From Anaeramoeba ignava BMAN (lineage: Eukaryota > Protista > Anaeramoebae), in NCBI GenBank assembly GCA_028826165.1, contig JAPDFW010000054.1, forward strand, positions 434,001 through 498,000: a stretch of DNA of 64,000 nucleotides. Direction: 5' to 3'. Made by a program: the position numbers and the translations under genes. Below the pieces are notes generated by a model. That model searched no databases. It was not told where the DNA came from and saw only the letters and a program-made list of their open reading frames with translations. Below, piece after piece: positions 50,135-56,582 of this stretch (its first letter is position 1; each line of letters starts with the position of its first letter).

Positions 50135-51532
50135 ATGTTCAATCCACAAAATACTTTTAAAATACTTTGTTTAACAGGAAGTAATTTAGGTTATAAAGAA
50201 AATGATCGAATTTGTCAAAATGATTCATTTGCATTATTTGAAGAAGCACTTCAAATAGCTGAAGAAAGAAAAGTTGATTTTATTTTACATTGTGGAAATT
50301 TTTTCTATTCAGAACCCTCAAAAGAAACACAGAAAAAAGCACTTCAAATCATAAGAAAAGTTTGTTTTGGAGAAAGAAAAGTGGGGTTTTCTGGATTTAA
50401 AATGGAAAAAGAAGGACATGATCAAAATCAATCACTCAATTTTCATGATCCAAATTTTCAAATCAAAATTCCCATTTTTGTGATTCATGGAAATTTTGAG
50501 ATCAATGAATCATCTCCTCTCGATATTTTTTCTGAGGCTAAATACATCAATTATTTTGGCCAACTTTCAGATCTTGATTCATCAATTCAACCAATTAAAT
50601 TATTAAAAGGATCCACAAAATTGAATTTATTTGGACTTGGATTTCATCCCATTTTGGATCAACAATCCACAAATACATCTCGCAATAATTCTATATTTAA
50701 TATTTCGCAAGGAGATTCACAAGCATTCAATCTCTTTGCTATTCATAGTTATTCCAATTTTAATCAAAATATTCTTGATCCAAAATCAAATTTCGGATCT
50801 TCGCAAAATTTAGTACTTTTTGGATCAGAATCTGGTTTTTTAAATAACAACTCAAATTCAGGGAATCTGGTTACATTAAAACCTTCGCTTCCTGTCGAGT
50901 TGCCAGATAGGGGTTTAAGTGACTGGGAAGAAAATAGGTGCATGATATTGGAAATTTCTGATAATAAATTCAAAATTGAATCAATTAAATTTGAAAATTT
51001 TAGAAAATTTTTTTATAATTCAATTCCTTCAATGGAAAAAAATGAACTTTATAATTTAGTGAAAAGAGAGTGCCAATATATTAAAAGACATATTCCACAA
51101 AAAACACGCTCATTTATATTTCCACCAAAATTTCTTGAGCTTCCTTTAGCTAGAATTGATATTACCTTGAAAGGTAATTCGGGTGATTTAATAAGAATAA
51201 ATGAAAATGATTCATTTTTTTCTGAATTAATTGCAAATCCAGATTCTGCTTTTAATTTTATTCAACATTCTTTTAATTTTCAAGATGAATCAAGTGTTCA
51301 AAATCGTGAACAAAATTTGGAAGAGATTTTCCAAAAAGAAATTCGATCTTTTGGTAATTCAACAAATATGCCTTCTTTTTTTGATCAATTTTTCACAATG
51401 AATTTATCTCAGAAAAAAAGTAAAAATTCAAATTCAAAAAAAAAACGGAAATCGGAAAGTAAAAAAAAGAATCCAAAACTTAAAAAGAGTAAAACAAAAA
51501 GTTCAAAAAAGAAAAAAAAAGATGATTTTTAA
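50135..51532 (+). CDS. MRE11: MRE11-like protein, intronless, with degenerate phosphoesterase motifs
   Basis: FKIL..T...LGY.E.D....NDSF..FEE.L.IA....VDFIL, N..DPN..I.IP.F.IHGN, GSTKL.L.GLG, FNLF.IH, LPL.RI, IANP: the eukaryotic MRE11 nuclease and capping domain pattern. Confidence 0.85.
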   Translation: MFNPQNTFKILCLTGSNLGYKENDRICQNDSFALFEEALQIAEERKVDFILHCGNFFYSEPSKETQKKALQIIRKVCFGERKVGFSGFKMEKEGHDQNQSLNFHDPNFQIKIPIFVIHGNFEINESSPLDIFSEAKYINYFGQLSDLDSSIQPIKLLKGSTKLNLFGLGFHPILDQQSTNTSRNNSIFNISQGDSQAFNLFAIHSYSNFNQNILDPKSNFGSSQNLVLFGSESGFLNNNSNSGNLVTLKPSLPVELPDRGLSDWEENRCMILEISDNKFKIESIKFENFRKFFYNSIPSMEKNELYNLVKRECQYIKRHIPQKTRSFIFPPKFLELPLARIDITLKGNSGDLIRINENDSFFSELIANPDSAFNFIQHSFNFQDESSVQNREQNLEEIFQKEIRSFGNSTNMPSFFDQFFTMNLSQKKSKNSNSKKKRKSESKKKNPKLKKSKTKSSKKKKKDDF

Positions 51533-51631
51533 TCAAATATTTTTCTTTTATTCAATCAATCAATCAAACATTTGATTAATTTTTTTATTTTTTTTTTTTT
51601 TGGAAAATAATATGGGAATCAATAAATTAAA

Positions 51632-53123
<1,492 letters not shown>

Positions 53124-53265: not shown

Positions 53266-56200
53266 ATGGAAGATAAATATAAACTTAATGGAATTATTGG
53301 AGAAGGTTTATTAATTTTTTATTAATACAAACAAAACTAAATCTTCTGAATTTTAAACAAAACAAAAAATTGAAAATTTTTTATGATAAAAAAAAAACGA
53401 ACAAAAAATAAAATCAAATAAAAATTATTATAATTATAATTGATAATATTTTCAGGTTCTTATGGAGTTGTTTATCAAGCTTATCATACTGAAACAAGTA
53501 AATATGCAGCTATTAAAGAGTATAAAAAACCCAAAAGAGGAAGTGATGTTGGAATTATGTTATCAACAATTAGGGAAATTAAACTATTAAAAGAACTTAA
53601 TCATGAACATATTGTTAAAATTGAGGATATTTTTTGTGATACAAATGAAAGGAAATTGTTTATTGCTTTTGAATATGCAGAGCATGATTTGATTGTAAAT
53701 TATTTTATTTACAAAATATTTTAATTCAACAATTATTTTATTTACTAAATAATTTAATTCAATAATTATTTTATTTACAAAATAATTTAATTCAATAATT
53801 ATTTTATTTATTAATTATTTTATTTACAAAATAATTTAATTCAACAATTATTTAATTCAACAATTATTTTATTTACTAATTATTTTAATTCAACAATTAT
53901 TTTATTTATTAAATAATTTAATTCAATAATTATTTAATTCAAAATATTAATTATTTTATTTACAAAATATTTTAATTCAATAATTATTTTACAAAATATT
54001 TATTGTAATTATTTTTTTAAAGGATTTAATTCAATAATTATTTTATTTACAAAAAATTTAATTCAAAAAATAATTTAATTCAACAATAATTTAATTTATT
54101 TCAATAATTATTTTATTTACAAAATAATTTAATTCAACAATTATTTTATTTATTAAATAATTTAATTCAATAATTATTTTATTTCAATAATTATTTTTAT
54201 TTACAAAAATAATTTATTTACAAAATAATTTAATTCAATAATTATTTTATTTATTAAATAATTTATTTCAACAATTATTTTATTTCAATAATATTTTATT
54301 TACAAAAATAACAATTATTTCAAATAATTATTTTAATTACAAAATAACTTAATTCAATATTTTTATTTACAAAATAATTTAATTCAACAATTATTTTATT
54401 TACAAAATAATTTAATTCAAAATTCAACAAATTTCAAAAAATTAAGTTCAATAATTAAATTCAAAATTATTTTAATTCAATAATAATTTAAAACAATTAT
54501 TTTTATTCAATAATAATTTAATTCAACAATTATTTTATTTACAAAATAATTTAATTCAATAATTATTTTAATTCAATAATAATTTAATTCAACAATTATT
54601 TTATTTATTAAATAATTTAATTCAATAATTATTTTATTTACAAAATAATTTAATTCAATAATTATTTTATTTACAAAATAATTTAATTCAACAATTATTT
54701 TATTTATTAAATAATTTATTTCAACAATTATTTTATTTCAATAATTATTTTATTTACAAAATAATTTATTTACAAAATAATTTAATTCAATAATTATTTT
54801 ATTTATTAAATTGATTAATTATTTATGTCCACTTTTTAAAGGATATTCTTGATTTTTATAAAAAGCAAAAAATGTTGATGCCTGAAATTATTGTTAAAAG
54901 TTTAATGTGGCAAATTTTAAATGGAATTCATTATTTACATACAAATTGGATTATTCATAGAGATTTGAAACCTGCAAATATTCTTATAAAAAATACATCA
55001 GAAGAAAGAGGAATTGCTAAGATTGGTAAATTAAATCAAATCAAATCAAAATTAAATCAAATCAAATCAAATCAAATCAAATCAAAATCAAATCAAAATC
55101 AAATTAAAATTAAATTAAATTAAATCAAATTAAATTAAATTAAAATCAAAATCAAAATCAAATCAAAATCAAATTTAAATTAAATTAAATCAAAATTAAA
55201 TTAAATTAAATTAAATCAAATTAAATTAAATTAAATTAAATTAAATTAAATCAAATCAAATCAAATCAAATCAAATCAAATCAAAATTAAATCAAATTAA
55301 ATCGAATTCAAAATTAAATCAAATTCAAATTAAATCAAATTAAATTAAATCAAATTAAATTAAATCCAAATTAAATCAAATTAAATCAAATCAAATTAAA
55401 TTAAATCGAATACAAAATTAAATCAAATTAAATCAAATTAAATTAAATCAAATCAAATCAAATTAAATTAAATTAAATTAAATTAAATCAAATTTAATCA
55501 AAATCAAAATCAAAATCAAATTAAATCAAATCAAATCAAATCAAATCAAATCAAATTAAATTAAATTAAATTAAATTAAAATTAAATTAAATTAAATTAA
55601 ATCCAAATTAAATTCAAATTAAATCCAAATTAAAATAAAATCAAAATTAAATTAAATCAAATTAAATCAAATCAAAATCAAAATTAAATTAAATCAAATT
55701 AAATCAAAATTAAATATTTTTCAAAGCCGATTTTGGACTTGCCAGAATCTTTCAAGATCCATCAAAAAGTTTAGGAAAAGATGGAGATGTAGTAACATTA
55801 TGGTATCGAGCACCGGAACTATTACTTGGAGCACAACATTACACACCAGCAATAGACATGTGGTCAGTTGGGTGTATATTTGCTGAACTAATCCAAAATC
55901 GGGAATTATTTCATGGAATTCCAGCAAAAAATGGAGGATTTGAAGAGGATCAGATCCGGAAAATCATCAATATTCTTGGAATTCCATCAACAAAATGGCC
56001 TGAATGTGTTAAACTTCCATATTATCGACATATATCCCAATGGGAACCACAATCAAATCAAATGAACTTGGCACAAGAACTTCGGATCGAAAGTGGAACA
56101 ACAAAATACAACTTGATCTCTCGAATGTTAAAATACGATCCAAAAGAAAGAATCACAGCACTTGATGCATTAAAACACACTTACTTCAACGAACCACCTT

Positions 56201-56582
56201 TGCCTTCTCCTTATGCTTTTAGTGAAAATGAGTTTGAATACCCAAAAAGACCTCTCAAACGAATTCATAAACTCCCTCAACAAATCTTATCTAATCAACA
56301 ACAACAAAACCCCAGTAATCCATCTAATCCCCCTATTGTCCCTATTGATCAAAATATCCCCCGAATTTCTATCCCAAAAAATCAAAATCGAAATCAAAAT
56401 CAATATCAAAATCAAAATCAAAATCAAATCAAAATCAAAATCAAAATCAATATCAAAATCAAAATCAAAATCAAAATCAAAATCTAAATCAAAATGTTTC
56501 TAATTCTTCTAAAAAAAATGAAAAAATTCTTCGTCAAAAAAAAAGAATTGTTTCAAAAAGAACTAAAAGAAAAATTAATTGA
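53266..56582 (+). CDS. CDK8: Cyclin-dependent kinase 8-like (exons 53266-53305, 53456-53694, 54842-55025, 55727-56582); frameshift in the NQ tail near 56428 makes the stop uncertain (56487 as assembled)
   Basis: [89 protein letters not shown]: CDK8 signatures. Confidence 0.9.
53700..54812. repeat. Degenerate about 33-bp intronic minisatellite (AATTATTTTATTTACAAAATAATTTAATTCAAT)
   Basis: Recurrent unit throughout CDK8 intron 2. Confidence 0.82.
55028..55715. repeat. 5-bp intronic satellite (CAAAT/TAAAT)n
   Basis: CDK8 intron 3. Confidence 0.9.

Follow-up and report, generated by a model that had tools for sequence, protein, structure and literature searches.

A transcribed MRE11 paralogue without a catalytic site in Anaeramoeba ignava, a candidate pseudonuclease encoded beside an intact MRE11

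Introduction

MRE11, a nuclease of DNA-break repair, is generally regarded as a homodimer encoded by one gene copy, and engineered point mutants have been the only means of separating its cutting role from its structural one. In XPF-ERCC1 and MUS81-EME1, which belong to a fold unrelated to that of MRE11, a homodimeric nuclease was duplicated, and one of the two paralogues lost its active site and stays as an obligate partner. In the case of yeast MRE11, the mre11-D56N and mre11-H125N alleles each abolish nuclease activity and keep other repair functions (PMC2625443). When we searched the full-text literature for naturally occurring MRE11 pseudoenzymes, for dead MRE11 paralogues, and for Anaeramoeba MRE11, we found nothing relevant.

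Here we describe an MRE11 homologue of the anaerobic amoeba Anaeramoeba ignava. It is encoded in a 64,000-nucleotide stretch of the genome, referred to below as the window. Like the eukaryotic MRE11 proteins (human MRE11A, Schizosaccharomyces pombe Rad32, and Chaetomium Mre11), the protein has a phosphoesterase domain, a capping domain, and C-terminal helices in the same order, with the conserved stretch at the N-terminus and the DPN motif of the loop still in place. In contrast to those proteins, it is short (465 aa), its RAD50-binding region is shortened, and it lacks a Gly-Arg-rich motif. It resembles the products of the two yeast alleles because the motif II Asp is Asn and the motif III His is lost at the same positions, but its changes are natural, are far more extensive, and are located in an extra gene that exists beside a live one. 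The presence of a live and a dead nuclease paralogue in one genome is also reminiscent of XPF-ERCC1 and MUS81-EME1, by analogy with which a heterodimer could be proposed.

Results

The ORF, its MRE11 match, AF2 and Foldseek analyses, and a transcript indicated that positions 50135 to 51532 on the plus strand of the window contained a complete gene, in one exon, that encodes an MRE11 paralogue of 465 aa without a catalytic site. The ORF extended from an ATG to a TAA and had zero in-frame stops, while the other five frames over the same interval had 21 to 56 stops each. The chance of finding 465 stop-free codons at the ORF's own base composition was 3.7e-19. In a genome with a GC content of 19%, the GC content of this gene was 36/30/15% by codon position, which is the pattern expected of a maintained coding sequence.

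Two neighbors were noted at the locus. Immediately downstream, at a distance of about 100 bp from the stop codon, was a minus-strand gene (window 51600-52000) that resembled one exon of a small GTPase of the Rab type. On the plus strand, window positions 53440-56487 contained a CDK-like protein kinase in several exons, and its introns were full of microsatellite-like AT-rich repeats.

A phmmer search of PDB sequences aligned residues 3 to 379 of the window copy with human MRE11 (3t1i; E 1.3e-36), and the next matches were S. pombe Rad32, Chaetomium Mre11, and yeast Mre11. When 1.84 billion representatives were searched exhaustively with phmmer, 1014 matches were obtained at E values up to 0.001, and all of those that were looked up by name were MRE11. 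The score for Pfam Metallophos (PF00149) was 20.6 bits, under the cut-off of 21.5, which fits the loss of motifs described below. Pfam Mre11_DNA_bind (PF04152) had no match in the window copy, and the DNA polymerase B-subunit family (PF04042) gave a sub-threshold match (E 0.064; 13.1 bits versus a cut-off of 29.1).

A single-chain AF2 model of the window copy was built from a 107-sequence alignment. Its mean pLDDT was 79 and its pTM was 0.77, and the pLDDT exceeded 90 across most of the phosphoesterase core. When the model was compared with the PDB via Foldseek, the best match was human MRN (9q9m_D; E 1.2e-29), and the other top matches were Chaetomium Mre11 (4yke) and S. pombe Mre11-Nbs1 (4fbw); the top three had E values of 1e-28 to 1e-29 and TM scores of 0.66-0.80. 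The phosphoesterase and capping domain fold was present in the model, and a helix after motif II, at the position of the dimerization helix bundle, was predicted with high confidence. Specifically, phmmer, AF2, and Foldseek placed a capping-domain-like region at residues ~268-377 (window 50936-51265, plus strand), which aligned with human MRE11 up to residue ~400. AF2 and the alignment placed a predicted helix-loop-helix (H395-406 and H412-441; window 51317-51457, plus strand) in the place that the RAD50-binding domain occupies in canonical MRE11. Compared to that canonical region, about 16 residues were missing, and a second MRE11 copy in the A. ignava genome, the C64 copy described below, was shortened in the same stretch. 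The sequence of the C-terminus contained a Lys-rich basic tail that was NLS-like or DNA-binding-like (residues ~425-462; window 51407-51520, plus strand) and had no Gly-Arg-rich motif; the C64 copy ended with the motif RGRGRGRG.

The residues that define the enzyme were a different matter. In motif I (window 50174-50191), TDIHLG was replaced by TGSNLG (residues 14-19), with an Asp-to-Gly and a His-to-Asn change at metal-A ligands (D20G and H22N in human numbering). In motif II (window 50291-50308), CGNFFY (residues 53-58) was found in place of GGDLFH, so the bridging Asp was Asn (D60N) and His63 was Tyr (H63Y). Motif III (window 50489-50500) was changed from GNHD to GNFE (residues 119-122), which kept the Asn, converted the catalytic His to Phe (H129F), and converted the next Asp to Glu (D130E). 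The His of motif IV (window 50738-50752) was kept, but VIHQN read AIHSY (residues 202-206) and the conserved Q-N-R was S-Y-S. In motif V (window 50819-50833), WGHEH was FGSES (residues 229-233), with both His residues converted to Ser (H245S and H247S) and the Trp converted to Phe. All five remnants were on the plus strand; motifs I, II, III, and V were placed via phmmer and alignment, and motif IV was placed via phmmer and the conserved-column table used below.

In total, about six of the nine catalytic or metal-ligand positions were replaced (GNNYNFHSS versus DHDHNHHHH). The only conserved positions left were the motif III Asn and the motif IV His, the acidic ligands of both metal sites were all gone (D20G and D60N), and the losses extended to the QPGS stretch and to the QNR that follows motif IV. 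The nine-column signature was read in a 155-sequence alignment that covered the best 150 of the 1014 matches and included the window copy and the C64 paralogue. The signature was DHDHNHHHH in 116 sequences and DHDDNHHHH in 16; among these best matches, GNNYNFHSS was found only in the window copy and its own transcript. Residues N55 and F121 of the window copy are natural equivalents of the positions altered in yeast D56N and H125N. Because of these two residues and the many further changes, nuclease activity of the window copy is very unlikely. By descent and predicted fold, then, the protein is an MRE11; by the features that define the enzyme, it is not.

These results agreed with the first-pass annotation of the locus, which had described an uninterrupted, intronless 465-aa ORF with the MRE11 scaffold and a basic, NLS-like C-terminal tail. 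All of the motif I to V substitutions that it had listed were recovered in the phmmer alignment to human MRE11. The alignment by HMM and structure prediction that it had proposed as a check identified the protein as MRE11 by both sequence and fold, with the Pfam Metallophos score just below the cut-off.

A 448-aa ORF in the EukProt A. ignava transcriptome (P0001) corresponded to the window copy, and the identity was complete over residues 1-437. Thus, the gene is transcribed, and its transcript has precisely the same substitutions, which are therefore not assembly errors. The agreement between P0001 and the genome stopped at residue 437, at an A10 run (window 51436-51445), and the last 11 residues of P0001 (FKKKERKLKRK) were encoded nowhere within the window, so that the 3' end of the mRNA can be placed only tentatively. 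We took the 3' mismatch to be an assembly problem in A-rich, low-complexity sequence.

A six-frame search of the 42.8-Mb A. ignava assembly identified one further MRE11 locus (G000:C64, ~698345-700108). This locus was a single 587-aa ORF, and it was also intronless. Its motifs (SDNHIG, CGDLFE, GNHD, MHQ, and GHLH) gave the signature DHDENHHHH, in which neither the metal ligands nor the catalytic His have been lost. The C64 copy passed Pfam Metallophos at 52 bits, matched human MRE11 with an E value of 4.6e-40, and was the only match in a genome-wide PF04152 search. Neither a transcript nor a close relative was found in the protein database when the C64 protein was used as a query, whole or as residues 185-540 only; low-complexity words swamp the index, and the result is uninformative on expression.

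The eukaryote-specific loop between MRE11 motifs II and III contacts NBS1 in solved complexes. In the C64 copy, this loop contained an in-frame, low-complexity, Asn/Gln-rich insert of ~95 residues with NLNES and QNIQN repeats.

The assembly also encoded a 1153-aa RAD50 (G000:C137) with Walker A (GKNGSGKS), a CVIC hook, the signature SQGQQ, and Walker B (LSLDE). Its best PDB matches were Chaetomium, yeast, and human RAD50. The Pfam Rad50 zinc hook HMM gave no match or a sub-threshold match, and the hook was read directly as CVIC in the C137 ORF. Pfam HMMs for the NBS1 C-terminus and SAE2 found no homologue in the A. ignava genome; NBS1 and Sae2/CtIP are short and fast-evolving, so a miss by Pfam does not show that they are absent. 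A candidate second RAD50, based on an AAA_23 match on C59, was rejected because it was a midasin-like AAA protein. Many other AAA_23 (SMC/RecF-type P-loop) matches were located on G000:C111, C91, C134, C127, C104, and C38, and several had in-frame stops, which suggests a multi-copy ATPase gene family with some broken members.

The C64 MRE11 and the hook-bearing RAD50 decided between the two readings that the first-pass annotation had offered. The reading that survived was that of a catalytically dead paralogue encoded in addition to a canonical MRE11, and the idea that the window encoded the organism's only, nuclease-dead MRE11 was abandoned once a paralogue with an intact site was found. A speculative link to the satellite expansion seen in the window went unsupported, because a live MRE11 and RAD50 are both encoded. 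The proposed genome search for MRE11 partners was partly successful: the canonical MRE11 and RAD50 were found, but NBS1 and Sae2/CtIP were undetected by the Pfam HMMs.

To compare the distribution of losses, we used 77 alignment columns that were conserved in at least 85% of 105 other homologues. The window copy had lost 18 of the 23 motif columns and 12 of the 54 others (Fisher p 6.5e-6, with a motif set that was chosen after seeing the table). The corresponding losses were 8 of 23 and 19 of 54 in the live C64 copy (Fisher p 1) and 2 of 23 and 7 of 54 in A. flamelloides MRE11 (Fisher p 0.72). Outside the active site, the window copy was better conserved than the live copy. Specifically, it kept N102 and N107 (the DPN loop motif), H118, N139-Y140, D24, S31, and F35, and the live copy had lost all of these residues. 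Complementary loss between the two copies was not observed beyond chance, and 15 columns were lost in both compared to 10.4 expected.

The MRE11 of the sister species Anaeramoeba flamelloides (P0010) was 871 aa long, had an intact site (DHDNNHHHH), and was 33% identical to the window copy and 28% identical to the live copy. Among the named matches from A. flamelloides, only canonical MRE11 was found, and its locus had no neighbors in common with either A. ignava locus. A Tc3/DDE_3 transposase (L018:4776-5902, JAOAOG010000345.1) was located ~4 kb upstream of the A. flamelloides gene. A word-indexed search, the exhaustive phmmer search, and clustering of the 155 sequences yielded no orthologue of the window copy beyond its own transcript and nothing above ~34% identity.

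The two A. ignava copies were sisters in three trees (SH-aLRT 81 and 87; FastTree 0.93). Their end branches were long and near-equal (3.35 and 3.34; 4.97 and 4.64), which indicated that the window copy is not evolving faster than the live one; the A. flamelloides MRE11 branch was 1.1-1.5. The sister grouping may be a long-branch artefact because both of the branches that it unites are long and have an odd composition. A clade of all three Anaeramoeba MRE11 sequences was not rejected (lnL difference 2.9; p-AU 0.375). The data fit, without proving, a duplication in the A. ignava lineage that was followed by fast change in both copies.

The open reading frame, the GC content by codon position, the equal branches, and the targeted pattern of loss pointed to selection for something other than catalysis. 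We infer from these sequence features that the window copy has been retained by purifying selection and is not decaying.

Discussion

The explanation that we favor, with a probability of about 0.6, is that the window copy is a retained, transcribed pseudonuclease paralogue of MRE11 that has a non-catalytic role in the MRE11-RAD50 complex, possibly as a heterodimer partner. MRE11 would have been duplicated, probably in the Anaeramoeba lineage. The C64 copy would then have retained the two-metal phosphodiesterase site, and the window copy would have lost both metal sites and the catalytic His while retaining the fold of the phosphoesterase and capping domains, the compact II-III loop that is specific to eukaryotes, and the C-terminal helix-loop-helix at the RAD50 site. 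A protein of this kind might still dimerize and bind RAD50, either as a heterodimer with the live paralogue, which would have one active site per complex, or as a dead homodimer. It could supply DNA-end binding, tethering, recruitment of partners, and control or restraint of nuclease access without cutting DNA. We infer RAD50 binding, the dimer partner, and the cellular role from the predicted structure and by analogy. The proposed mechanism draws on the retained fold and surfaces, the behavior of the nuclease-dead yeast alleles, and the precedent of XPF-ERCC1 and MUS81-EME1. The window copy could plausibly act as a scaffold or an asymmetric partner, given the retained fold, the non-catalytic conservation, and the predicted C-terminal helix-loop-helix.

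A more specific version of this proposal, an obligate asymmetric live/dead heterodimer like XPF-ERCC1 or MUS81-EME1 with divided labor, is tentative, and we would not bet on it. In such a heterodimer, the compact II-III loop of the dead subunit and its residues N102, N107, H118, N139, and Y140 would serve partner binding. The live subunit would provide the active site; its II-III loop is interrupted by the ~95-residue insert, and it has lost those non-catalytic residues.

It is unlikely that the window copy acts outside the MRE11-RAD50 pathway as a neofunctionalized protein whose fold is reused to bind DNA ends, nucleic acid, or another protein, although several observations are in line with this idea. 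The RAD50-binding region is shortened and Pfam Mre11_DNA_bind has no match, the branch is very long, and the Lys-rich tail is found instead of the Gly-Arg-rich motif of the live copy. The B subunits of DNA polymerases alpha and epsilon, in which inactivated calcineurin-like phosphoesterase domains are used as scaffolds, provide a precedent, and the window copy has a weak, sub-threshold match to PF04042. However, the shortening is not specific to the window copy because the live copy is shortened in the same RAD50-binding stretch, and conservation outside the active site, including the motif II-III loop, is above that of the live copy.

A duplicate that is transcribed and open but no longer under selection, and is drifting toward loss, would be in keeping with the missing catalytic site and with the finding of no orthologue in other organisms, and the lack of an intron makes a retrocopy origin possible; the live copy is intronless too, however. 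We consider such drift quite improbable, since the gene is ~70% diverged from every relative, yet its 465 codons are stop-free (chance 3.7e-19), its GC content by codon position is 36/30/15%, its substitutions are concentrated in the motifs and not evenly spread, and the live copy has a branch of about the same length. The idea that N55, N120, H204, and S231 form a remodeled enzyme that binds one metal and hydrolyzes some substrate takes advantage of the fact that the metal-B ligands Asn120 and His204 are kept and that Asn and Ser can ligate metals. It is nevertheless highly improbable: the acidic ligands are all gone, Phe is found in place of the catalytic His, Ser has replaced each His of motif V, the QNR and QPGS stretches are lost, and a single change at D56 or H125 already abolishes the yeast nuclease (PMC2625443).

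If the pseudonuclease paralogue is indeed retained beside a live copy, it would be a natural separation-of-function experiment. It could show which surfaces of MRE11 matter when cutting is not needed and whether a single active site, or none at all, is enough for an MRE11-RAD50 complex to work. If a heterodimer forms, MRE11 would join the nucleases that evolved a dead partner subunit. A. ignava is hard to manipulate, and the function considered here comes from the sequence and the predicted fold only.

Loss of the MRE11 site may have occurred more than once and escaped study, because partly degenerate MRE11-like proteins are found in unrelated lineages. Several catalytic positions are replaced in proteins from Sitodiplosis mosellana (P0021; DHNHKLNGS), Heterolobosea sp. 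BB2 (P0022; DHNHCNHHT), and Prymnesium parvum (P0097; DHNHDRHHH), and these proteins are possible independent MRE11 pseudonucleases. Compared to the window copy, each of the three has fewer losses and keeps motif I, and they come from independent lineages and do not group with the window copy in the trees.
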